Below are positions 3,401-59,565 of a stretch of 64,000 nt of DNA, one piece after another (within the stretch, counting starts at the first letter, position 1; each line of letters opens with the position of its first letter). Location: positions 1-64,000 of the forward strand of contig NIVC01000508.1 of NCBI GenBank assembly GCA_002269645.1. The letters are read 5' to 3'. This stretch comes from Macrostomum lignano (taxonomy: Eukaryota). Both the position numbers and the translations under genes were made by a program. The notes beneath the pieces were generated by a model that made no database searches, was not told where the DNA came from, and was given only the letters and a program-made list of their open reading frames with translations.

Positions 3401-5947
3401 AGTGGAGGGTAGCCAGTTTCACCGGGCTGACAAACAGCTCATGGACTGTTTTCTGTACTTTAGCAAGGGCCGCTACGATTGCAGCCTGCCCGCTAGCACC
3501 TACGACAGTCTGGTTAGCAAGTTTAATCCGGCTTTTGGCGAATCAGAGAAGGTCACCATTGTTGGCCTGTTTCCAATGAGCAATGCTGCTCAGTACAGCT
3601 ACCCAGAACCTATCTATTGCGCATTCAACACCAGCAATGTCCAAATTGGCTATTGTGGATGTTGAGGCTGGACAAATCGATTGTGTTGTAGCCAGTCCGC
3701 CAGGCAGGATTCACTGCGCGATGCAGGTCTGTGTCTGCTTCTGTGCCTACCGTCTCACCTACCCTGCCTACTGTCTCACCTACCCTGCCTACCGTCTCAT
3801 CTACCCTGCCTACTGTCTCACCTACCCTGCCTACCGTCTCATCTACCCTGCCTACTGTCTCATCTACCCTGCCTACCGTCTCACCTACCCTGCCTACTGT
3901 CTCACCTACCCTGCCTACCGTCTCATCTACCCTGCCTACTGTCTCACCTACCCTGCCTACCGTCTCATCTACCCTGCCTACTGTCTCACCTACCCTGCCT
4001 ACCGTCTCATCTACCCTGCCTACTGTCTCATCTACCCTGTCTACCGTCTCACCTACCCTGCCTACTGTCTCATCTACCCTGCTACCGTCTCACCTACCCT
4101 GCCTACCGTCTCACCTACCCTGCCTACCGTCTCATCTACCCTGCCTACTGTCTCATCTACCCTGTCTACCGTCTCACCTACCAGCTGTCTACCGTCTCAC
4201 CTACCCTGTCTACTGTCTCACCTACCAGCTTTCTACCGTCTCACCTACCCTGTCTACCGTCTTATCTACCCTGCCTACACCCTGTCTGCCGTCTCACCTA
4301 CCAGCTGTCTACCGTCTTATCTACCCTGCTTACCGTCGTCACCTACCGTGTCTATCGTCTTTTCAACCCGTCTACCGTCTCACCTACCCTGCTTACCGTC
4401 TCATCTACTATCTTATCTACAATTTTAACTTGCCTAGCATTCTGTCTACCGTTTCTTGTACTACCCTGTCTACTGTCTCATCTATTCTGTCTACCATTTC
4501 CCCTACTACAAATGTTTACTCTAATTTCTGTCTTCTCAGGTGAGCAGCGAGCCGTCGCACTTCTGGTTGGCCACCTACCATCACCAGAGCGGCAGTCAGC
4601 TGACTGTGATCTGCACCGCCCATCGTACTCATTCAACCGAGGAGCGCTTGATAGGTCACCGACATCCGGTGCTGAGCATGGTAGAAGTTAACGATCACTG
4701 CTACTCAATCAGCAGCGGATTCAGCATCGCCGACAAGCAGCCAGCCGAAATTTTAGTCTGGCACACTGCTCAAAGAAAGCTGCTAAGACGAGTAGACTGC
4801 GGACCGGGTGTCAGGCCAGTGTGCTTGAGTCCGATCACCGCTGCCCACCAATGTGCAGGCGGATGCGATATGAGCGAAGTAGTCAAACCGTTGCTGCTGT
4901 TCTGCAGTCGCAGGTTTGGACGATTAGAATTGCTTGCCTAAATACTACTACTTACTAAGTAGATTAAAAGTCCATATATGGCCCAACTCCTAAAAATCTT
5001 TAGTCCTCCAGTCACGCGGCCCTAGACAAAATTTTCTACCCCCCTCCAATGTACACCCGCTCTAGCCTAACTGCTCCAATCCTCCAGCCACGCGGCCCTA
5101 GGCAAATATTCCCCCCCCCCAATGTACACCCGCTCTAGCCTAACTGCTCCAATCCTCCAGCCACGCGGCCCTAGGCAAATATTCCCCCCCCCAATGTACA
5201 CTCGCTATAGCCCAACTGCTCCAATCCTCCAGCCACGCGGCCCTAGACAAATATTTCTACCCCTTAAATGTACATTGCTCTAGTCAAGGCACTACTGATG
5301 TGATTCGTCTACACCTGCTACCATTGATTTCCAGAGCAATCTTCAGCCTAAATGCCAGTCACAAGCCTCAACTCTTGGTCAGCTTAGAATCCGGTGGCCA
5401 TTTTGAATGCGATCGATTGTTAGCTTTAACCACTCAAGACCATCGCCTAGTGCTGGTGGCAGCCTCTGATCGAGTTGGTGAACTACGTTTCTACCCTACG
5501 GAGCTTGGCCCTAGCAACAAACCGGCTCTAACAGTTCGAGAGCCGGCTAGCCGACTAAAGCTACAGTGCCCGTCGGAGACTGGCCGCTGTCGAGGCATTG
5601 GCTCGCTGTGCCAGCTAACCGTGCCGGAAGATTCTAAAGACCCTAGCAACAAAGCTTCAGCTAAGAAATCTATGCTGCTAGTTGGCTGCAAAGAGGGCTA
5701 CATCTTTCTAGTTGAATTCGGCTTTGGGAAAGCCGACAGCCAGTGTTGCGAGGCCCGACAGCTGCTTTCGCTGCACGGCCACGCCGACGTTGTGGAGTGT
5801 CTGACCGCGCCGCCATCGCCTGGTCGGTGGTTTCTGAGCGCCGCTCGCAGTCACGATGGCTACATCGCAGTGTGGGACTCGAGGACGACGGCGAGGATTG
5901 CTAGCCTAGCGGGACTGGACGAGACGAAGGGAAAGAAGAAACAATAG
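485..5947 (+). CDS. DENND3: DENN domain-containing protein 3 homolog (Rab GEF), 3' part: exons 485-1173, 1700-1945, 3197-3726, 4540-4913, 5335-5947. The 5' exons lie left of the window. About five 1-nt frameshifts are needed to keep the frame.
   Basis: All four introns are GT..AG and phase-compatible once the frameshifts are allowed. Peptides align colinearly with the recalled DENND3 C-terminal half: IHYLRSMYHLATGQNVPALRD; SFGECLANLGISFDEELQRRLFNTL..VDPGVFDAFYEMW; PH-like IVLKAGSLVHVEKLGAGHLILT-KRLYL; WYTVLEEYLAA..KDRTILHKACENALIIDTL; KFNPAFGES; terminal WD40 HGHADVVECL..FLSAARSHDGYIAVWD. Stop TAG at 5945-5947. Confidence 0.85.
1268..1640. repeat. 23/28-bp minisatellite (AGATCCTCAGTTGCTGGGCCAGC[CTCTC])n in a DENND3 intron; same family as 54365-55340
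   Basis: Unit read directly. Confidence 0.95.
1985..3175. repeat. 31-bp minisatellite (CCAGTTGCATTAAACACCCTCCAGGCCAATT)n in a DENND3 intron
   Basis: Unit read directly; degenerate at the 5' end and homogeneous from about 2940 to 3170. Confidence 0.95.
3745..4490. repeat. 21-bp minisatellite (CTACCCTGCCTACCGTCTCAC)n in a DENND3 intron
   Basis: Unit read directly. Confidence 0.95.
5005..5280. repeat. About 72-bp tandem repeat, roughly 4 copies, in the last DENND3 intron
   Basis: AATGTACAC..CTAGCCTAACTGCTCCAATCCTCCAGCCACGCGGCCCTAG recurs at 5048, 5121 and 5193. Confidence 0.9.
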
Positions 5948-37223: not shown

Positions 37224-37396
37224 TTTATCTGTTTTGACAGATAAATGTTGTATGTAAACATTGACGAATTTACTAGTTAACTTACTTAACTTTTCCTTGA
37301 TACTTTACTACTAGTAGTTGTATGTAACTTGATTTGTAGGTAGCAAAATGAATTATTGTATTTAATTTGATTCCAGTTAACACAACAGCAACTATA

Positions 37397-39106
<1,710 letters not shown>

Positions 39107-40104
39107 GCTTGAGAAAAAATATTTTTGACCAGACTTTGACCGCATTGGCGTCAAAAAAACGAAGTTAGTATTTTATTAAAATGTATTTGAATTTTAAATA
39201 CAAACAATGATTTACTTTTATTTTATCTAATGTCATTCGTTTCCTTAACTTTTTTGCAACGACGTATATTAAAACTAAGGTAAATATCGATCTATTTATG
39301 TACTTTTATTGCAATCAAATTTTCACACCGGTTTCGCTAGTTTTTTGTGTATAAATCATAATTCAATTTTTCGGCATGCATTTGTTCGCAGTTGCTAAAG
39401 TAGTTTGTAAATAAATTTTTCCTCTCAAACATGTCGCAGTGCTTATTTTATTTTTATTTATCGAATTTTAAAAAATTCAACTTTTATTATAATTTGTCTA
39501 GAAAAATACACTTGAAATGTTTATTGCTCTACTATGAGTAGACTTTTGCGAGCATGACTTGAAGCTATATATATTTTTTGTGCAACAATTTGCTATTACG
39601 ATTTATTACTGTATTGCTCAATGGTATTGCTATTGCAAGTTGCTTCCTAAACTGTGTGCCGTTACCCACACACTGTACTTTCTGTAACTAAATGTGTTTA
39701 CGTTTACTTTTTGTGTCAATGATTATCATAGTCGGGGCGAAGTTTTTCTGCTTTTTTTTCTCTTCTCGTATACAGTTGTGCAATAAAAATATATGTCGAA
39801 TATTTTATAAGGCCACGCGATTTGCTTGTTTGTTAATTGGCTCTCCTTGTTATTTAATAATTATAAACAGTTAGAATTATTCATTAAGAAATTTTCTAAA
39901 GTTGACGCTGCAAGAGTGCAAATGGGTTTTTAAGATCACATAGAATCAGTTTTCATAGAATCTAGTAGAAGCAGGTTTTTTAGAATCCAAGATAATCACG
40001 TTTATAATGATGCAGAGTAGAATCGAGTTTCTAAGAATCCAGGAGAGTCAAATTTCTTATAATAGGGCAGAATCATGTTTGTTAAAATCTAAGAGTAAAA
40101 CCAG

Positions 40105-40680
40105 CTTTCTTAGAATCCAGAGTAGAATTAGCTTTCTTAGAATCCTGTAATTATCGAGTTTTGTTAGAATCCACTAGTTATCGAGTTTTCTTTGAATCCA
40201 GTAGTTATCGGGTTTTCTTAGAATCCAGTAATTATTGGGTTTTCTTAGAATCCAGTAATTATCGGGTTTTCTTAGAATCCAGTGATTATCGGGTTTGCTA
40301 GAATCCAGTAATACCGGGTTTCTTAGAATCCAGCATTATCAATTTTCTTAGAATCCAGCATTATAAAGTTTCTTAGAATCCAGCATTATAAAGTTTCTTA
40401 GAATCCAGCATTATAAAGTTTCTTAGAATCCAGCATTACCAAGTTTCGTAGAATCTAGCATTATCAAGTTTCTTAGAATCCAGCATTACCAAGTTTCTTA
40501 GAATCCAGCATTATCAAGTTTCTTAGAATCCAGCATTATCAAGTTTCGTAGAATCTAGCATTATCAAGTTTCTTAGAATCCAGCATTACCAAGTTTCTTA
40601 GAATCCAGCATTATCAAGTTTCTTAGAATCCAGCATTACCAAGTTTCCTTAGAATTCAGTGTTATCAGGTTTCTTAGAAT
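40105..40680. repeat. 25-bp minisatellite (TTCTTAGAATCCAGCATTATCAAGT)n just upstream of ABCB7
   Basis: Unit read directly. Confidence 0.92.
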
Positions 40681-40809
40681 GCTGAGTAGAATCAGGTGTA
40701 TTGGAATCTAGCAGAATTATTTTTCCCGGAAATCATTAGAAAGCTGCGTAATAAACTCCATAAACAATGCTGCAATCCAAATATACTACTTATTACCCGA
40801 CAACGCCAG

Positions 40810-41638
40810 TCGCTAATTGGGTGCTCTCGGGTTCTGCTGGCCAATCGCCTCCTGCTGGGCCGGTTGCCACCGCCGCCCGCAGTCAGCCTGGTACTGCAGT
40901 CTTCTCGTTGCTTAGCAACGCGTCGTCAGCTGCCGGACGCTGGCCAGCAATCGCAGCAGCAGCAACAGCAACAGAAAAATAATCAGAGCCGCAGGCTGTG
41001 CAGCTCACACGGCCATATCGACTCAAGTCTAGGCGGCACCAACATCGACGCTAAACAGTCCGTTCGATCCACAGAATGGGGCACCGTGAAGTACATGCTG
41101 AACTTTGTCTGGCCGAAGGATAAACCGGGAATCCGGGCCAGAGTGCTGCTAGCTTTGGGCCTGCTAGCCGGATCTAAGCTGGTTAATGTGCAGGTGAGCG
41201 TCTAAGTGTCTGAGCGTCCGGCTCTCGCGCCACAACTCCCCTCCCCTTGCCCCCTGGGTTTTGGGGCCTTTGGTGCGCGAAGCTTGGCCAAGGGGTTGAC
41301 TTTCATGCCTGTGCACCATGTGTGAGCGTGTGTATGAGTGCGTGCCTGCGTACAGTATTGGCGCGCTTGTCTGTGCTCAGGAGTCCGAGGAATGGGCAGA
41401 ATTGCCGTCAGCGCTAGCTGTGGGACAAAGTCGCCGAAGGCGTTGTTCCAGTGTGCTCGCAGCCTTCCCGAAAATATTTATTTTTGTAAACTGAACTTCA
41501 ATTCAGGCTGTCTGTCTTTCTGTCATAGTGTCTGTCTGTGTGTCTGTCTGTGTGTCTGTCTGTCTGTCTGTCTGTGTGTCTGTCTGTGTGTCTGTCTGTG
41601 TGTCTGTCTGTCTGTCTGTCTGTGTGTCTGCCTTTCTT

Positions 41639-41693
<55 letters not shown>

Positions 41694-41712
41694 GCCTTTC
41701 TTTCTGTCTTTG

Positions 41713-41745
<33 letters not shown>

Positions 41746-41773
41746 TAGTGTGTCCTAGATCTGTCTGCTTGCC

Positions 41774-41818
<45 letters not shown>

Positions 41819-44800
41819 CCATTAGGTCTGCTGTCTAATGTCTGTGTTACAGATGTTTCTACATATATACGCGTAATGCCTCTCTGTCTGTGGAGGTCTG
41901 CCTACACACGGATCAAATATCGAATTCCAATGGTTTGCAAATTCTCAAACAGCGCCGCCTCTCCCGCTCCCAACCGCAGGTGCCCTTCCTATTCAAGTAC
42001 GCAGTGGACGCAGTCAATGACGCCAACACGGCCATAGGTTCCGCTGTAGGCGATGGTGCACCTGTTGTAGCCGCCGCGTTGTTCTCAGTTACTGGCCTTA
42101 TCGCGTCGTACGGCGTTGCCAGGGCAACCGCTAGCGGTTTTAACGAGCTCCGTAATGCGGTATTCGCCCGCGTTGCTCAGGACTCGATTCGCCGTGTTGC
42201 CAAAACTGTATTCCTGCACCTGCACAGCCTTGATTTGCAGTTTCATCTGAATAGGCAGACTGGGGCTCTGTCCAGGGCTATTGACCGAGGCACCAGGTGA
42301 GAATCGCTCCACACCATGAGAATCGCCCCACATCAAGAAACCCCACACCATGAGAATTGTCCCACACATCAAGAAACCCTACACCATGAGAATCGCCCCA
42401 CATCAAGAAACCCCACACCATGAGAATCGCCCACACATCAAGAAACCCCACACCATGAGAATCGCCCCACATCAAGAAACCCCACACCATGAGAATCGCC
42501 CCACATCAAGAAACCCCACACCATGAGAATCGCCCACACATCAAGAAACCCCACACCATGAGAATCGCCCACACATCAAGAAACCCCACACCATGAGAAT
42601 CGCCCCCCCCATCAAGAAACCCCACACCATGAGATTCGCCCCCCATCAAGAAACCCCACACCATGAGAATCGCCCCCCATCAAGAAACCCCACACCATGA
42701 GAATCGCCCACACATCAAGAAACCCCACACCATGAGAATCGCCCACACATCAAGAAACCCCACACCATGAGAATCGCCCCACATCAAGAAACCCCACACC
42801 ATGAGAATCGCCCACACATCAAGAAACCCCACACCATGAGAATCGCCCACACATCAAGAAACCCCACACCATGAGAATCGCCCACACATCAAGAAACCCC
42901 ACACCATGAGAATCGCCCCCCCCATCAAGAAACCCCACACCATGAGATTCGCCCCCCATCAAGAAACCCCACACCACGAGAGTTGTCCCCCATTAAGAAA
43001 CCCTGGGGTTGTAGCCTAGTGGTTAAAGCGTCGCACCCACGACTTGAAGGTCGGGGGTTCGATTTCTGATCCAATTGGAACAATTTGTGTCCTTGAGCAA
43101 GACACTTAACTCTGCATTGCTTCAGTTCACCCAGCTGTAAAATGGGTGCCAGCATTAGATGGGGTAATTGAGGCTGTGTGGCGACTCCCCAGTCCTTGGT
43201 CTGAACAGCCGTACGCAGCCTTCAGATGCGCGGTGCAATAGCTGCGGCTGAGCTGTCGGTTGCACATCTGGCCCAATTGGGCAGGTGTAATCAATTATTA
43301 ATATTATAAATAAACCCCTCACCATGAGAATCGCCAATCACACAACCCCGCAGAGGCATCAACTACATACTAAATGCAATAGTATTTAACGTGGCGCCAA
43401 CCGCCCTGGAGGTGTCCCTAGTAACCGGCATTCTGTGGTACAAGTGCGGCCCAGCCTACGCCGGGGTGGCCATCGCCAGCATCGCCTCCTACGCGGCTTT
43501 CACATTCAGCTTCACCCAATGGCGCACGAAATTTCGTCAGCAGATGAACAAGGCGGATAATTTGGCTGGCAATCACGCTATTGATTCGTTGATTAATTAT
43601 GAGACTGTTAAGTATTTTAATAATGAGCGCTTTGAGGCCGACGAATACGACCGATTGTTGAAGGTAAGTCTTTATTGGTTGGCAGCTAGTTCTACCTGGG
43701 GAGATAGACTTGCAGCCAAATCTACTCAGGTAGATAAATAGACTTGCAGCCATATCTACTCAGGTAGATAAATAGACTTGCAGCCATATCTACTCATGTA
43801 GATAAATAGACTTGCAGCCATGTCTACTCAGGTAGATAAATAGACTTGCAGCCATATCTACTCAGGTAGATAAATAGACTTGCAGCCATATCTACTCATG
43901 TAGATAAATAGACTTGCAGCCATATCTACTCATGTAGATAAATAGACTTGCAGCCATATCTACTCATGTAGATAAATAGACTTGCAGCCATATCTACTCA
44001 TGTAGATAAATAGATTTGCAGCCATATCTACTCAGGTAGATAAATAGACTTGCAGCCATATCTACTCAGGCAGATAAATGGACTTGCAGCCATATCTACT
44101 CAGGCAGATAAATAGACTTGCAGCCATATCTACTCAGGTAGATAAATAGACTTGCAGCCATATCTACTCAGGTAGATATATAGACTTGCAGCCATATCTA
44201 CTCTGGTAGATAGACTCGCAGCCATATCTACTCAGGCAGATAAATAGACTCGCAGCCATATCTACTCAGGCAGATAAATAGACTTGCAGCCATATCTACT
44301 CAGGTAGATATATAGACTCGCAGCCATATCTACTCAGGTAGATAAATAGACTCGCAGCCATATCTACTCAGGTAGACAGACTCGCAGCCATATCTACTCA
44401 GGTAGACAGACTCGCAGCCATATCTACTCAGGTAGACAGACTCAGCCATATCTACTCAGGTAGACAGACTCACAGCCATATCTACTCAGGTAGACAGACT
44501 CGCAGCCATACCTACTCAGGTAGACAGACTCAGCCATATCTACTCAGGTAGACAGACTCAGCCATATCTACTCAGGTAGACAGACACAGCCATATCTACT
44601 CAGGTAGACAGACTCAGTCATATCTACTCAGGTAGATAGACTCACAGCCATATCTACTCAGGTAGACAGACTCAGCCATATCTACTCAGGTAGACAGACT
44701 CACAGCCATATCTACTCAGGTAGACAGACTCACAGCCATATCTACTCAGGTAGACAGACACAGCCATATCTACTCAGGTAGACAGACTCACAGCCATATC

Positions 44801-47800
44801 TACTCAGGTAGACAGACTCGCAGCCATATCTACTCAGGTAGACAGACTCACAGCCATATCTACTCAGGTAGACAGACTCGCAGCCATATCTACTCAGGTA
44901 GACAGACTCACAGCCATATCTACTCAGGTAGACAGACTCGCAGCCATATCTACTCAGGTAGATAGACTCACAGCCATATCTACTCAGGTAGACAGACTCG
45001 CAGCCATATCTACTCAGGTAGACAGACTCACAGCCATATCTACTCAGGTAGACAGACACAGCCATATCTACTCAGGTAGACAGACTCACAGCCATATCTA
45101 CTCAGGTAGACAGACTCGCAGCCATATCTACTCAGGTAGACAGACTCACAGCCATATCTACTCAGGTAGACAGACTCACAGCCATATCTACTCAGGTAGA
45201 CAGACTCGCAGCCATATCTACTCAGGTAGACAGACTCACAGCCATATCTACTCAGGTAGACAGACTCGCAGCCATATCTACTCAGGTAGATAGACTCACA
45301 GCCATATCTACTCAGGTAGACAGACTCACAGCCATATCTACTCAGGTAGACAGACTCGCAGCCATATCTACTCAGGTAGACAGACTCACAGCCATATCTA
45401 CTCAGGTAGACAGACTCACAGCCATATCTACTCAGGTAGATAGACTCACAGCCATATCTACTCAGGTAGACAGACTCACAGCCATATCTACTCAGGTAGA
45501 CAGACTCGCAGCCATATCTACTCAGGTAGACAGACTCACAGCCATATCTACTCAGGTAGACAGACTCACAGCCATATCTACCCAGGTAGATAGACTCGCA
45601 GCCATACCTACTCAGGTAGATAGACTCACAGCCATATCTACTCAGGTAGATAGACTCACAGCCATATCTACTCAGGTAGATAGACTCACAGCCATATCTA
45701 CTCAGGTAGATAGACTCAGCCATATCTACCCAGTCCCGTCATGGATCACCAATCCAAATGCCATATCCGCAGGACTACGAACGCGCATCGCTCCGCATTC
45801 AGACCAGCCTAGCGGCGCTGAACTGGGGCCAGAGCGCCATATTCAGCGCCGGATTAACAGCTGTAATGCTACTAGCGGCCAGCGACATAGCAGCCGGCAG
45901 TCTGACAATAGGCGATCTGGTTATGGTTAACGGCCTATTGTTTCAATTAACAATACCATTGAACTTTCTTGGCTCAGTTTATCGGGATATGCGCCAAGCT
46001 TTAGTTGATATGCACGCCATGTTTAGTCTGCTACAATTGCGCGGCCAATCTGATTATGATGCTGCAGATGAGGCTAAGCCGAAATTGAATGCCAGGCCCG
46101 ATCGAGCCGAAGTGGAATTTCGCGATGTTAACTTTGGCTACGTTCCGGGTAGTGACATTTTATCCGGCTTGAGCTTCACTGTGCCCTCCGGCAAGAAGGT
46201 GGCTTTAGTTGGCGGCAGCGGTAGCGGCAAGTCAACTATAGTGCGACTATTGTACCGCTTCTTTGAGGCCCAATCGGGTTCTATACTCATTAATGGTGTG
46301 GACATTCGGCAGGCTAGTTTGGGCGAGCTGCGCAAAGCTGTTTCTATTATACCGCAGGTAAAATATTCTAGGGGTATTCGGAATTGCAGTACTAGTAGTT
46401 AGTAGTAGTAGTTAGAAGTAGTAGTAGTTACTAGTAGTCGTAGTAGTAGTAGTAGTAGTAGTTACTAGTAGTCGTAGTAGTAGTAGTAGTAGTAGTAGTT
46501 AGTAGTAGTAGTAGTATAGTAGTAGTAGTACTCGTAGTAGTAGGTAGTAGTAGTAGTAGTAGTAGTACTCATAGTAGTAGTAGTAAGTAGTAGTAGTACT
46601 CATAGTAGTAGTAGTAAGTAGTAGTAGTACTCGTAGTAGTAAGTAGTAGTAGTAGTACGATAGTTTAAATAAGTAAGTAATAGTAGTAAGTAGTTTAACA
46701 CAATTTCCAAACACCCTTAACCTGACCTATCGACAACCCACCACAGGACTGCGTGCTCTTCAACAACACCATTCGTCACAATATACACTACGGCGACCTC
46801 TCAGCCACACCCGAACAGGTGGAAGCCGCTGCCCGCCTAGCCGATCTTCACGATTCAATTATGCGAATGCCGAGACAGTACGATACTGTTGTTGGCGAGC
46901 GGGGACTCAAGCTTAGCGGTGGAGAGAAACAACGAGTAGCAATTGCTAGAGCCGTGCTCAAACAGGCGCCTATCCTTATCTACGATGAGGCCACTTCGAG
47001 TCTGGATTCTATTACAGAGAAGAATATTCTTAGTAAGTCTGGTTTTTCTACTATCTAAGTTTGTACTTCTCTCCAGTGTCTAAAAAGTTTCCTGGGGTGC
47101 CGACACACCTGAAGATGCTATGAGTAGCGGCACCCACTCCTAAAAAAGTGGCACCCACCCTGAAGAATCGGAGGGTAGCGACACCCACCCCTGAAGAATC
47201 AGAGGTTAGAGACACCCACCACCCCTGAAGAATCGGAGGTTAGAGACACCCACCACCCCTGAAGAATCAGAGGTTAGAGACACCCACCACCCCTGAAGAA
47301 TCGGAGGTTAGAGACACCCACCACCCCTGAAGAATCGGAGGTTAGAGACACCCACCATCCCTGAAGAATCGGAGGTTAGAGACACCCACCACCCCTGAAG
47401 AATCAGAGGTTAGAGACACCCACCACCCCTGAAGAATCAGAGGTTAGAGACACCCACCACCCCTGAAGAATCAGAGGTTAGAGACACCCACCACCCCTGA
47501 AGAATCAGAGGTTAGAGACACCCACCACCCCTGAAGAATCGTAGGTTAGAGACACCCACCACCCCTGAAGAATCGGAGGTTAGAGACACCCACCACCCCT
47601 GAAGAATCGGAGGTTAGAGACACCCACCACCCCTGAAGAATCAGAGGTTAGAGACACCCACCACCCCTGAAGAATCGGAGGTTAGAGACACCCACCACCC
47701 CTGAAGAATCGGAGGTTAGAGACACCCACCACCCCTGAAGAATCGGAGGTTAGAGACACCCACCACCCCTGAAGAATCGGAGGTTAGAGACACCCACCAC

Positions 47801-50800
47801 CCCTGAAGAATCGGAGGTTAGAGACACCCACCACCCCTGAAGAATCGGAGGTTAGAGACACCCACCACCCCTGAAGAATCGGAGGTTAGAGACACCCACC
47901 ATCCCTGAAGAATCGGAGGTTAGAGACACCCACCACCCCTGAAGAATCAGAGGTTAGAGACACCCACCACCCCTGAAGAATCAGAGGTTAGAGACACCCA
48001 CCACCCCTGAAGAATCAGAGGTTAGAGACACACACCACCCCTGAAGAATCGTAGGTTAGAGACACCCACCACCCCTGAAGAATCGTAGGTTAGAGACACC
48101 CACCACCCCTGAAGAATCGGAGGTTAGAGACACCCACCACCCCTGAAGAATCAGAGGTTAGAGACACCCACCACCCCTGAAGAATCAGAGGTTAGAGACA
48201 CCCACCACCCCTGAAGAATCGGAGGTTAGAGACACCCACCACCCCTGAAGAATCGGAGGTTAGAGACACCCACCACCCCTGAAGAATCGGAGGTTAGAGA
48301 CACCCACCACCCCTGAAGAATCGGAGGTTAGAGACACCCACCATCCCTGAAGAATCGGAGGTTAGAGACACCCACCACCCCTGAAGAATCAGAGGTTAGA
48401 GACACCCACCACCCCTGAAGAATCAGAGGTTAGAGACACCCACCACCCCTGAAGAATCAGAGGTTAGAGACACCCACCACCCCTGAAGAATCAGAGGTTA
48501 GAGACACCCACCACCCCTGAAGAATCGTAGGTTAGAGACACCCACCACCCCTGAAGAATCGGAGGTTAGAGACACCCACCACCCCTGAAGAATCAGAGGT
48601 TAGAGACACCCACCACCCCTGAAGAATCAGAGGTTAGAGACACCCACCACCCCTGAAGAATCGTAGGTTAGAGACACCCACCACCCCTGAAGAATCGGAG
48701 GTTAGAGACACCCACCACCCCTGAAGAATCAGAGGTTAGAGACACCCACCACCCCTGAAGAATCAGAGGTTAGAGACACCCACCACCCCTGAAGAATCAG
48801 AGGTTAGAGACACCCACCACCCCTGAAGAATCAGAGGTTAGAGACACCCACCACCCCTGAAGAATCAGAGGTTAGAGACACCCACCACCCCTGAAGAATC
48901 GGAGGTTAGAAACACCCACCACCCCTGAAGAATCAGAGGTTAGAGACACCCACCACCCCTGAAGAATCAGAGGTTAGAGACACCCACCACCCCTGAAGAA
49001 TCGGAGGTTAGAGACACCCACCACCCCTGAAGAATCGGAGGTTAGAGACACCCACCACCCCTGAAGAATCAGAGGTTAGAGACACACACCACCCCTGAAG
49101 AATCAGAGGTTAGAGACACACACCACCCCTGAAGAATCAGAGGTTAGAGACACCCACCACCCCTGAAGAATCGGAGGTTAGAGACACCCACCACCCCTGA
49201 AGAATCAGAGGTTAGAGACACCCACCACCCCTGAAGAATCGGAGGTTAGAGACACCCACCACCCCTGAAGAATCGGAGGTTAGAGACACCCACCACCCCT
49301 GAAGAATCAGAGGTTAGAGACACCCACCACCCCTGAAGAATCAGAGGTTAGAGACACCCACCACCCCTGAAGAATCGTAGGTTAGAGACACCCACCACCC
49401 CTGAAGAATCGTAGGTTAGAGACACCCACCACCCCTGAAGAATCGTAGGTTAGAGACACCCACCACCCCTGAAGAATCGGAGGTTAGAGACACCCACCAC
49501 CCCTGAAGAATCGGAGGTTAGAGACACCCACCACCCCTGAAGAATCGGAGGTTAGAGACACCCACCACCCCTGAAGAATCAGAGGTTAGAGACACCCACC
49601 ACCCCTGAAGAATCGGAGGTTAGAGACACCCACCACTCCTGAAGAATCAGAGGTTAGAGACACCCACCACCCCTGAAGAATCAGAGGTTAGAGACACCCA
49701 CCACCCCTGAAGAATCAGAGGTTAGAAACACCCACCACCCCTGAAGAATCAGAGGTTAGAGACACCCACCACCCCTGAAGAATCAGAGGTTAGAGACACC
49801 CACCACCCCTGAAGAATCGGAGGTTAGAGACACCCACCACCCCTGAAGAATCGGAGGTTAGAGACACCCACCACCCCTGAAGAATCAGAGGTTAGAGACA
49901 CACACCACCCCTGAAGAATCAGAGGTTAGAGACACACACCACCCCTGAAGAATCAGAGGTTAGAGACACCCACCACCCCTGAAGAATCGGAGGTTAGAGA
50001 CACCCACCACCCCTGAAGAATCAGAGGTTAGAGACACCCACCACCCCTGAAGAATCAGAGGTTAGAGACACCCACCACCCCTGAAGAATCAGAGGTTAGA
50101 AACACCCACCACCCCTGAAGAATCAGAGGTTAGAGACACCCACCACCCCTGAAGAATCAGAGGTTAGAGACACCCACCACCCCTGAAGAATCGGAGGTTA
50201 GAGACACCCACCACCCCTGAAGAATCGGAGGTTAGAGACACCCACCACCCCTGAAGAATCGGAGGTTAGAGACACCCACCATCCCTGAAGAATCGGAGGT
50301 TAGAGACACCCACCACCCCTGAAGAATCAGAGGTTAGAGACACCCACCACCCCTGAAGAATCAGAGGTTAGAGACACCCACCACCCCTGAAGAATCAGAG
50401 GTTAGAGACACCCACCACCCCTGAAGAATCAGAGGTTAGAGACACCCACCACCCCTGAAGAATCGTAGGTTAGAGACACCCACCACCCCTGAAGAATCGG
50501 AGGTTAGAGACACCCACCACCCCTGAAGAATCAGAGGTTAGAGACACCCACCACCCCTGAAGAATCAGAGGTTAGAGACACCCACCACCCCTGAAGAATC
50601 GTAGGTTAGAGACACCCACCACCCCTGAAGAATCGGAGGTTAGAGACACCCACCACCCCTGTAGAATCAGAGGTTAGAGACACCCACCACCCCTGAAGAA
50701 TCAGAGGTTAGAGACACCCACCACCCCTGAAGAATCAGAGGTTAGAGACACCCACCACCCCTGAAGAATCAGAGGTTAGAGACACCCACCACCCCTGAAG

Positions 50801-52710
50801 AATCAGAGGTTAGAGACACCCACCACCCCTGAAGAATCGGAGGTTAGAAACACCCACCACCCCTGAAGAATCAGAGGTTAGAGACACCCACCACCCCTGA
50901 AGAATCAGAGGTTAGAGACACCCACCACCCCTGAAGAATCGGAGGTTAGAGACACCCACCACCCCTGAAGAATCGGAGGTTAGAGACACCCACCACCCCT
51001 GAAGAATCAGAGGTTAGAGACACACACCACCCCTGAAGAATCAGAGGTTAGAGACACACACCACCCCTGAAGAATCAGAGGTTAGAGACACCCACCACCC
51101 CTGAAGAATCGGAGGTTAGAGACACCCACCACCCCTGAAGAATCGGAGGTTAGAGACACCCACCACCCCTGAAGAATCGGAGGTTAGAGACACCCACCAC
51201 CCCTGAAGAATCGGAGGTTAGAGACACCCACCACCCCTGAAGAATCAGAGGTTAGAGACACCCACCACCCCTGAAGAATCAGAGGTTAGAGACACCCACC
51301 ACCCCTGAAGAATCGTAGGTTAGAGACACCCACCACCCCTGAAGAATCGTAGGTTAGAGACACCCACCACCCCTGAAGAATCGTAGGTTAGAGACACCCA
51401 CCACCCCTGAAGAATCGGAGGTTAGAGACACCACCACCCCTGAAGAATCGGAGGTTAGAGACACCCACCACCCCTGAAGAATCGGAGGTTAGAGACACCC
51501 ACCACCCCTGAAGAATCAGAGGTTAGAGACACCCACCACCCCTGAAGAATCGGAGGTTAGAGACACCCACCACTCCTGAAGAATCAGAGGTTAGAGACAC
51601 CCACCACCCCTGAAGAATCAGAGGTTAGAGACACCCACCACCCTGAAGAATCAGAGGTTAGAAACACCCACCACCCCTGAAGAATCAGAGGTTAGAGACA
51701 CCCACCACCCCTGAAGAATCAGAGGTTAGAGACACCCACCACCCCTGAAGAATCGGAGGTTAGAGACACCCACCACCCCTGAAGAATCGGAGGTTAGAGA
51801 CACCCACCACCCCTGAAGAATCGGAGGTTAGAGACACCCACCACCCCTGAAGAATCAGAGGTTAGAGACACACACCACCCCTGAAGAATCAGAGGTTAGA
51901 GACACCCACCACCCCTGAAGAATCGGAGGTTAGAGACACCCACCACTCCTGAAGAATCAGAGGTTAGAGACACCCACCACCCCTGAAGAATCAGAGGTTA
52001 GAGACACCCACCACCCCTGAAGAATCAGAGGTTAGAAACACCCACCACCCCTGAAGAATCAGAGGTTAGAGACACCCACCACCCCTGAAGAATCAGAGGT
52101 TAGAGACACCCACCACCCCTGAAGAATCGGAGGTTAGAGACACCCACCACCCCTGAAGAATCGGAGGTTAGAGACACCCACCACCCCTGAAGAATCAGAG
52201 GTTAGAGACACACACCACCCCTGAAGAATCAGAGGTTAGAGACACACACCACCCCTGAAGAATCAGAGGTTAGAGACACCCACCACCCCTGAAGAATCGG
52301 AGGTTAGAGACACCCACCACCCCTGAAGAATCGGAGGTTAGAGACACCCATCCCCCCTGAAGAATCGGAGGGTAGCGACACCCACCACCCCTGAAGAATC
52401 GGAGGGTAGCGACACCCATCCCTGAAGAATCGGTGACTGCAGTACAGTGCTGGCACTCAATCCTTCAAGTTCGCTCCCAATGCCGCCAACTACATGCTAA
52501 TTTTCAGACTCCCTAAAAGCCGCCTCCAGCGGTCGAACCTCAATCGTGATTGCGCACCGCCTGGCAACAGTGGTTGACAGCGATCTAATCTTGGTACTAC
52601 AGGGCGGTCGAGTTGTTGAGCAGGGCAACCACTACGAGCTCATAGCCCAGCCAGACAGCTTGTACAGTCATCTGTGGCGAGAGCAAAATAAAGGCGCTCA
52701 GGGATTTTGA
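40810..52710 (+). CDS. ABCB7: Mitochondrial ABC transporter ABCB7/ATM1: exons about 40810 (or 40767)-41193, 41980-42296, 43354-43663, 45773-46357, 46747-47032, 52508-52710
   Basis: All five introns are GT..AG and phase-consistent. The translation has [123 protein letters not shown], Walker [10 protein letters not shown], signature LSGGEKQR, Walker [12 protein letters not shown] and IAHRL. The start is ambiguous (see findings). Confidence 0.97.
41505..41830. repeat. (GTCT)n/(GTGTCT) microsatellite, ABCB7 intron 1
   Basis: Read directly. Confidence 0.95.
42297..43003. repeat. 34-35-bp minisatellite (ACCATGAGAATCGCCCACACATCAAGAAACCCCAC)n, ABCB7 intron 2
   Basis: Unit read directly; it starts at the donor site and resumes briefly after the SINE. 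Confidence 0.95.
43005..43310 (+). mobile_element. tRNA-derived CORE-like SINE (copy 2) inserted in ABCB7 intron 2
   Basis: Colinear with 6031-6342; A and B boxes present; flanked by AAACCC on both sides (possible TSD). Confidence 0.85.
43700..45730. repeat. 34-bp unit grading to a 30-bp unit (AGACAGACTCACAGCCATATCTACTCAGGT)n, ABCB7 intron 3
   Basis: Unit read directly; about 65 copies. Confidence 0.97.
46390..46690. repeat. (TAG)n microsatellite, ABCB7 intron 4
   Basis: Read directly. Confidence 0.95.
47125..52432. repeat. 34-bp minisatellite (CCCCTGAAGAATCRGAGGTTAGAGACACCCACCA)n, about 155 copies over 5.3 kb, ABCB7 intron 5
   Basis: Period 34 (ACCCCTGAAG at 47221 and 47255); very homogeneous. 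Confidence 0.98.
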
Positions 52711-53780: not shown

Positions 53781-53867
53781 GGAGGCGACAGAGGGGCACT
53801 AAAAATCTCAAATCTTCACAAATTTGTTTTCAGCGAGTTCCAACACCTTCAAGCAGCAGGAGCAGCA

Positions 53868-58098: not shown

Positions 58099-59565
58099 CC
58101 GGTGGCGGCAGCCTTCAATTCCGGGTTGGCCCAACTGGGCATCGCCCTGGCGGTCGCAGTGGCCTGTCTCTCGGCCATCTACCCGGGTCTGCTGCGCCCG
58201 CTTCTGTCAGCCGCCGGGACTCGTCTATTCCAATCATCGAGTGCTGATAGCAGCGGTAGCGATAGCAACGCGTTGAATCCCCAGCAACCGTTGTCAAGGC
58301 CGCCGCCGGGACCGAATCCGCACCTGCAAGGTCGGCAGCAGCATCAACAGCCGCAGGCGTCTCTTCTACTAGCCATAGTGCTGCCAATCTACAGTGTGGC
58401 AATCGTGTGCTTTCTCATCTACACTCTAGTGAGGTTTCTCAGCGTCCGTCCCACCCGACGGCAGCTGTCTATGGCCGCGGCCGCTGATGCTGCTGCAGTC
58501 GCCAACGACAAGGCTGTCGTCTACGATGCTTCGTTGAGAGAATTTCGTCGCTCCGGCGAGCGTCAGTTTACTCCGATTTCTAAGAAAATGGATGGCGTGA
58601 GTCGGTTTCTAAATTTTTATTCAACTCGATGTAGCTTGGCTTTTGAGTAGAAATTTTATTGTTGAATACTTGTTGAAGAATTGCATCATAGAAGAAAGCT
58701 CCTCGTGTTTCCTAGAAACAATTCCGTTTCTGAGAAAAATTCTTTGTGGTTCCAAAAACAGGCTATAGGAGTCCTAAAAACAGATTATATATAACTTCTA
58801 GAAACAGACGTTCTGATTCCTAGAAACAGACTTTCTGATTCCTAGAAACAGACTTTCTGATTCCTAGAAACAGGCTTTTTGATTCCTAGAAACAGGCTTT
58901 CTAATTCCTAGAAACAGGCCTTCTGATTTCTAGAAACAGGCTTTCTTATTCCTAGAAACAGGCTTTCTTATTCCTAGAAACAGGCTTTCTTATTCCTAGA
59001 AACAGGCCTTCTGATTCCTAGAAACAGGCCTTCTGATTTCTAGAAACAGGCCTTCTGATTTCTAGAAACAGGCCTTCTCATTTCTAGAAACAGGCCTTCT
59101 AATTCCTAGAAACAGGCTTTCTGATTCCTAGAAACAGGCTTTCTGATTCCTAGAAACAGGTCTTCTAATTTTTAAAAACAGGCTTTCTTATTCCTCAAAA
59201 CAGCTTCTCTCTGATTCCTAAAGCGTCATAGCTAGAAATTCACAAACTGAAACGAACTGTTCAATTCCTAGAAACCCTTCCCCAAACAGCATTCGCAGCC
59301 ATCCAACGAACCGCCTTTGGAATCGTTGGAGCGTGACCTTCAACGCCTGGTGGAGCGATTGGACGCCAGGGAGCCGCAGCAGCAGCGGCGACACTACGGC
59401 GACGCCGATGTCGGCTACGGAATCGACAAAAACTCGGGGGCCGAACTGGCCGACCGGGCCGCGCTGCGGCGAGAGCTGGCCGCCACCGAAGTGCGGATGA
59501 TGCGGCTGCTGGAGCAGATCCGGAGAGGCGAGTTGAACGCGTCTGAGGACGACTGCGCTAGCTAG
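58099..59565 (+). CDS. RIC3: RIC-3 (nicotinic acetylcholine receptor chaperone): exons 58099-58596 and 59290 (or 59299)-59565; no in-frame genomic ATG found
   Basis: N-terminal hydrophobic LGIALAVAVACLSAIYP, Pro-rich spacer, TM LLAIVLPIYSVAIVCFLIYTLVRF (recalled RIC3 IIPIYGFGIFLYILY) and C-terminal coiled coil LRRELAATEVRMMRLLEQI; phase-0 intron GGC|GTGAGT..ACAG|CAT. Confidence 0.85.
58790..59220. repeat. 22-bp minisatellite (TTCCTAGAAACAGGCTTTCTGA)n, RIC-3 intron
   Basis: Unit read directly. Confidence 0.93.

Follow-up and report, generated by a model that had tools for sequence, protein, structure and literature searches.

All spliced leaders (SLs) reported from flatworms end in AUG and are able to supply a start codon (PMC12582326). 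For S. mansoni, an in-frame SL AUG is reported for 28% of trans-spliced transcripts, and over 40 cDNAs depend on it (Cheng et al. 2006, via PMC9851317), and flatworm ORFs started by an SL AUG have been termed 'slORFs' (PMC9851317). The SL of Macrostomum lignano has 35 nt (CGGTCTCTTACTGCGAAGACTCAATTTATTGCATG) and ends in ...TTGCATG (PMC8629364), and the terminal ATG of the Macrostomum SL has already been called a likely start codon (PMC10468722). S. mansoni and M. lignano have the same last seven SL nucleotides, TTGCATG. Translation from the schistosome SL AUG was reportedly tested by Cheng, Cohen, Ndegwa and Davis in 2006 (J Biol Chem 281:733). In the available text of Wudarski et al. 2017 and Ustyantsev & Berezikov 2021, the 5' ends of trans-spliced M. 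lignano genes are set by SL reads, SL-AUG-dependent ORFs are not discussed, and such CDSs are deposited as '5' partial'. Schistosome phytochelatin synthase was considered as a precedent for a mitochondrial signal made by an SL AUG and was rejected, since the available part of the source describes alternative cis-splicing.

Here we explore the 5' end of the M. lignano gene for ABCB7. The mechanism is known in flatworms, and ABCB7 is a further gene of the SL-AUG class. As in that class in S. mansoni, its acceptor is in phase with the ORF and there is no genomic start codon for the conserved N-terminus. Unlike the S. mansoni cases it concerns another gene, in a free-living basal flatworm, and the SL-AUG start is here predicted from sequence. 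No paper tying ABCB7 to SL-AUG initiation was found in the literature searched.

The stretch of DNA analysed, hereafter the window, comprises positions 1-64000 of contig NIVC01000508.1 of M. lignano assembly GCA_002269645.1 (Mlig_3_7). When its conserved exons were concatenated, the top match was PAA81874.1, 'hypothetical protein BOX15_Mlig023843g2, partial [Macrostomum lignano]', placed by the contig record at 40810-52710 of NIVC01000508.1, and the next-ranked matches were metazoan ABCB7 proteins at 55-63% identity. Against structures, PAA81874.1 matched human ABCB7 with 798 bits (E about 5e-239) over residues 62-692, followed by plant ABCB25/ATM3 (701 bits), fungal Atm1 (599-636), ABCB6 (446) and ABCB1 (about 416). 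Precomputed domain assignments give a six-helix ABC_membrane domain (PF00664) and then one nucleotide-binding ABC_tran domain (PF00005). As judged from these matches the gene product is ABCB7, nearer to ABCB7/Atm1 than to other ABCB members. The half-transporter layout of ABC_membrane and ABC_tran is the same as in human ABCB7 and yeast Atm1, the mitochondrial exporters of the Fe-S-cluster pathway, as is the presence of a non-conserved N-terminal extension ahead of the first transmembrane helix. Unlike in human ABCB7 and Atm1, the start codon is not encoded by the gene and the poly-Gln length of the extension varies among copies. The deposited PAA81874.1 is reproduced exactly by a six-exon model with GT-AG introns, all exons resting on that model:

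40810 to 41193, forward strand: ABCB7 exon 1, opening with TCG, which would become codon 2 of the protein behind an SL AUG
41980 to 42296, forward strand: ABCB7 exon 2
43354 to 43663, forward strand: ABCB7 exon 3
45773 to 46357, forward strand: ABCB7 exon 4
46747 to 47032, forward strand: ABCB7 exon 5
52508 to 52710, forward strand: ABCB7 exon 6, stop codon included

The gene is 11.9 kb long in the window and about 6 kb in three sister copies, the window copy being inflated by repeat arrays. Tandem repeats occupy the outron and the introns, namely a 25-bp unit repeated about 29 times (39941-40680), CTGT x 76 (41508-41818), a 35-bp unit x 20 (42298-43003) and a 30-bp unit x 66 (43702-45733). 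The sister copies likewise contain the 3' end of the first array, close to the ABCB7 acceptor on its upstream side.

39941 to 40680, forward strand: 25-bp tandem-repeat arrays (unit TTTCTTAGAATCCAGCATTATCAAG, about 8 + 21 copies; TRF), outron or intergenic, upstream of ABCB7

The original prediction was that the ABCB7 frame has no Met before its conserved core and that the only nearby ATG, at 40767, lies in another frame, which closes at 40982. Both statements are borne out by the reading frames. The ABCB7 frame is open from 40696, that is 38 codons upstream of the acceptor, and its first ATG lies at 41095. The prediction also placed a CAG at 40807-40809, followed in frame by TCG CTA ATT GGG TGC TCT CGG, which is correct, and a quoted tract in front of this CAG, which needs a small correction: the tract, TACTACTTATTACCCGACAACG, spans 40784-40805, and one extra C (40806) separates it from the CAG. 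The features at issue are the following:

40767 to 40982, forward strand: 71-codon out-of-frame ORF from the ATG at 40767-40769 (context AAACAATG), an ATG upstream of the acceptor
40807 to 40809, forward strand: CAG, probable SL trans-splice acceptor of ABCB7 (deposited CDS start at 40810; SL 3' bases in sister copies L002 and L004, see below)
40810 to 41094, forward strand: codons 2-96, non-conserved N-terminal extension with a putative presequence and a poly-Gln linker (from sequence; structures align only from residue 62)
41076 to 41078, forward strand: first genomic AUG of the predicted mature mRNA, out of frame, with a 15-codon ORF, in strong context (CAGAATGG)
41095 to 41097, forward strand: Met97, the earliest in-frame ATG of the genomic sequence, with which the conserved MLNFVWPKD core begins (frame reading)

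The M. lignano annotation was made by trimming and mapping SL-containing reads and using their peaks to cut transcripts at the exact 5' ends (PMC5730564). The deposited ABCB7 CDS, PAA81874.1, is 5'-partial and starts at 40810, the first base past the CAG. Since the frame is open for those 38 further codons upstream and yet the CDS was not extended into them, the acceptor must be where the transcript model begins. In three copies the CDS (PAA81874.1, PAA51918.1 and PAA81848.1) is flagged 5'-partial and begins SLIGCSRV..., and all four annotated CDSs of the same-strand cluster in the window (37379, 40810, 53835 and 58099) begin 0-2 nt past a CAG. With the published trans-acceptor motif, [T/C]TNCAG, the ABCB7 acceptor shares just the CAG. 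Two older UniProt models, A0A1I8J8T1 and A0A1I8J2P1, which from their accession series we take to come from the earlier ML2 assembly, are identical to the products of two copies apart from an extra N-terminal Gln (CAG codon), and this gives slight support to CAG being the true genomic state. No entry starting MSLIGC was found by exact look-up of M + PAA81874, PAA81848 or PAA51918 in the protein collection, and a search with exons 1-2 yielded nothing but remote ABCB7 fragments from vertebrates, insects and others, with no N-terminus from Macrostomum or another flatworm.

An acceptor without a cis donor upstream is the classical condition for SL trans-splicing. Between the stop of the upstream gene and the acceptor (39107-40809) no donor fits GT[AG]AG, the consensus published for M. 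lignano. The alternative is that an unannotated 5' exon, spliced in the ordinary way to 40809 besides or instead of the SL, brings an ATG. Parasitic flatworms are reported to use the same acceptor sites extensively for both trans- and cis-splicing (PMC12582326), the open frame continues upstream of the CAG, and 12 of the 98 GT dinucleotides in 39107-40809 follow an ATG whose frame is open and in phase. Against such an exon, these 1.7 kb from the upstream stop (39106) hold zero consensus donors, the RNA-seq-guided annotation shows no such exon in any copy, and the bases found over the acceptor in two sister copies match the SL and not an arbitrary exon end, a pattern repeated at a second gene. 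We consider a cis-spliced exon very improbable. That the CAG at 40807-40809 is the SL trans-splice acceptor of ABCB7, with the SL AUG supplying the start codon as the original prediction proposed, is in our judgement highly likely.

No SL RNA gene was found in the window, nor any match of at least 8 nt to the SL 3' end (8, 10, 12, 20 and 35 nt tested), and an Rfam search of the 64-kb window at gathering thresholds gave zero matches. Matches of at least 6 nt to the SL 3' end were fewer in the window than expected by chance, so there is no obvious overwritten acceptor in the window copy.

The 5' regions of four genomic ABCB7 copies were aligned: the window, L002 (NIVC01000655.1), L003 (NIVC01003335) and L004 (NIVC01000510.1). 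With the splice junction marked by a slash, the acceptor reads CAACGCCAG/TCG in the window and L003, CAACGCATG/TCG in L002 and CAATGCATG/TCG in L004. The latter two carry 2 and 3 substitutions, respectively, each toward the SL 3' end, so that a junction core of GCCAG/TCG in the unaltered copies stands against GCATG/TCG in L002 and TGCATG/TCG in L004. The acceptor of the next gene (window 53833) behaves likewise: TTTTCAG/C in the window and TTTCCAG/C in L003 and L004, but TTGCATG/C in L002, whose 3-4 changes are again every one toward the SL, at a place where the SL AUG falls outside the reading frame and plays no coding role. When the four loci were scanned on both strands, CATG-versus-AG differences proved to be confined to those two acceptors. 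L002 and L003 differ at 3/570 aligned bases, and the chance of such substitutions is about 3e-6 to 1e-11 per site. The division into CATG and CCAG copies also cuts across haplotypes. The window and L004 share a long poly-Gln allele and downstream SNPs, L002 and L003 share a short poly-Gln allele, and each haplotype pair includes one CATG copy.

The assembly was polished with Pilon using RNA-seq mapped by STAR (PMC5730564). The simplest and most likely reading is that RNA-seq reads with a short SL overhang aligned across the junction and that Pilon 'corrected' the DNA toward them; SL bases would thus stand in the DNA because RNA-seq was used for polishing. If they are such a polishing artefact, the bases in the sister copies would be the footprint of mRNAs reading ...UUGCAUG/UCGCUAAUUG, an indirect stand-in for SL-clipped reads. 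Alternatively, the CATG copies may be real alleles that carry their own ATG where the other copies take that of the SL; the deposited L002 and L004 do read ATG/TCG in frame, and if these alleles were true, the polyploid genome would hold, beside copies with a genomic ATG, others in which that ATG has turned into a CAG acceptor and the SL brings the AUG, and would show encoded and SL-donated start codons in the course of interconverting. This is contradicted by the equally overwritten acceptor of the next gene (TTGCATG/C), where the SL AUG does nothing for coding, by changes that reach past the ATG and match 5-7 nt of the SL, by a CATG distribution in conflict with the haplotype background, by the documented polishing with RNA-seq, and by older UniProt models that are identical to the L004 product and start with Gln (CAG), not Met. 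Real alleles are accordingly a doubtful proposition to which we give very little credence.

Overwriting by SL bases is an observation in its own right. The SL 3' end (GCATG, TGCATG or TTGCATG) lies over CAG acceptors at 5585-5589 and 12444-12450 in L002 and at 5995-6000 in L004, sites that correspond to 40805-40809 and 53827-53833 in the window.

The copies also bear on the alternative offered with the original prediction, namely a 1-nt assembly error after the ATG at 40767, with a protein that really starts MLQSKYTT.... This assembly is based on PacBio and does have indel errors, of which the 7-nt gap in the poly-Gln run of L002 is an example. The position and frame of the ATG at 40767 are, however, kept in all four independently assembled copies, with zero indels between it and the acceptor; this identical spacing, with the same out-of-frame relation, contradicts the alternative. 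Homopolymers in between do not exceed 3 nt, the deposited transcript models start at 40810 and not upstream, the SL footprints lie exactly at 40809/40810, and the peptide in the frame of the ATG at 40767 has just 2 basic residues in its first 40. A frameshift is therefore extremely improbable. For any single acceptor the chance of being in phase is 1 in 3, as had been pointed out and as we agree; the in-phase acceptor, the deposited start at 40810 and the SL footprints in paralogues are together well beyond chance.

The gap in L002 lies at 5700-5760 of NIVC01000655 (window 40950-40965), within the run of CAG and CAA codons. It consists of the 6-nt L003 allele and the loss of one A from an A5 run, and as a consequence the L002 protein, PAA79020.1, is annotated in the wrong N-terminal frame. 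The probable cause is an assembly error in a homopolymer; the copy is less likely to be a pseudogene.

With trans-splicing at the CAG, the 5' part of the primary transcript (the outron), including the ATG at 40767, would be discarded; that ATG would be missing from the mature mRNA because it sits in the outron. The 35-nt SL would be joined to TCGCTAATTGGG... at 40810, with a predicted junction ...TTGCATG/TCGCTAATTG at 40809/40810. The SL carries a trimethylguanosine cap. Its last three bases, AUG, would directly abut the ABCB7 frame in phase and thereby form the initiation codon, which scanning ribosomes would meet first. In the sequence of SL plus exon 1 the SL AUG is the sole AUG within the first 300 nt, with none in any frame until 41076, and AUG/UCG CUA AUU GGG... 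runs in frame through the ABCB7 core to the stop at 52710. The product would be a 695-residue half-transporter of the ABCB7/Atm1 type starting MSLIGCSRV..., and we infer that ribosomes start at this SL AUG. Its context is weak, with U at -3 and U at +4. Two neighbouring genes use their own ATG, the SL AUG not being in their frame, so that leaky scanning (or re-initiation) is to be assumed there and scanning past the SL AUG must be frequent in M. lignano; some leakiness at the SL AUG of ABCB7 is plausible too.

In a further alternative, the SL would still be added but translation would start at Met97 (41095) or at a non-AUG codon, giving a protein without the 96-residue extension. The weak context of the SL AUG speaks for this, as do the neighbouring genes, which must be translated by scanning past it, and an older database model, A0A1I8J8S6, that begins at Met97. 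A start at Met97 would remove the entire N-terminal extension, and several findings argue for its being translated. A strong-context, out-of-frame AUG (41076) lies 19 nt upstream of Met97. No stop codon interrupts the frame over the 285 nt between the acceptor and Met97, and here the copies differ by an in-frame 6-nt indel. The extension, with 96 residues before MLNFVWPKD, compares with 112-130 ahead of the same motif in seven metazoan orthologues with full N-termini. ABCB7 is moreover a protein of the inner membrane and is expected to need an N-terminal import signal, as in human ABCB7 and yeast Atm1. We therefore regard a start downstream of the SL AUG as unlikely.

With initiation at the SL AUG, the N-terminus was predicted to be Arg-rich, acid-free and amphipathic. 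The composition holds: the first 40 residues include 6 Arg and 0 Asp/Glu, the first acidic residue being at position 44, and are rich in Leu, Ala and Ser. Amphipathicity is not supported, given that, in a crude calculation with an 18-residue window at 100 degrees, the first 40 residues have a helical hydrophobic moment of 0.25-0.30, not above that of composition-matched shuffles. An Arg-rich, acid-free composition is typical of matrix-targeting presequences, and the ABCB7 N-terminus is on these grounds a putative mitochondrial import signal.

Like the published M. lignano clusters of same-strand trans-spliced genes with repeat-rich spacers, as described in the available text of Wudarski et al. 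2017 and Ustyantsev & Berezikov 2021, ABCB7 belongs to a same-strand cluster, here of four genes. M. lignano operons have been defined by adjacent same-strand trans-spliced genes at a repeat-adjusted intergenic distance below 1 kb (Ustyantsev & Berezikov 2021). From the upstream stop at 39106 to the acceptor at 40809 there are 1703 nt, about 740 nt of which are tandem repeat, leaving about 960 nt before subtraction of the 3'UTR. An AATAAA hexamer at 40750-40755, about 55 nt upstream of the ABCB7 acceptor, is kept in four of four copies. Were this hexamer to serve the upstream gene as its poly(A) signal, it would leave an intercistronic distance of at most about 100 nt, a typical operon size.

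Two of the other cluster genes deserve mention. At the upstream gene (297 aa product; 37377-37399) an SL AUG would open a 7-codon uORF, AUG UUA ACA CAA CAG CAA CUA UAA, the stop of which overlaps the gene's own start codon (UAAUG) in an arrangement like that of termination and re-initiation; in the sister copies the leader is 2 nt longer and the frame relation is another. The annotated CDS of a RIC3-like gene (254 aa product; window 58099-58460) lies directly after CCGCAG, and its frame, read colinearly, has no Met in the first 120 codons (58099-58458; PVAAAFNSGLAQLGIALAVAV...). A tandem repeat, CCACCCCAAAACCCTCTACCCCACCTCACG, lies directly upstream. By its reading frame, the RIC3-like gene at 58099 is a candidate for a second SL-donated start codon in the cluster.

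The ABCB7 case leaves the known SL-AUG mechanism unchanged and is of modest interest, such starts being established in flatworms. In some copies of Mlig_3_7 the probable overwriting of acceptors introduces ATGs that are not genuine and removes AG acceptors, which is a caveat for studies of splice motifs, start codons and allelic variation that use this assembly; in practice this may outweigh the ABCB7 case itself. Pipelines that trim the whole SL, its ATG included, would systematically mis-call genes of this kind. The M. lignano ABCB7 proteins deposited as 'partial', with a Gln start or with a Met97 start, would be complete once the SL AUG is added, and other '5'-partial' CDSs that start right at acceptors are likely to be completed by the SL AUG as well. 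To the set of genes that rely on trans-splicing for their start codon, ABCB7 would add an essential gene of the mitochondrial Fe-S pathway.
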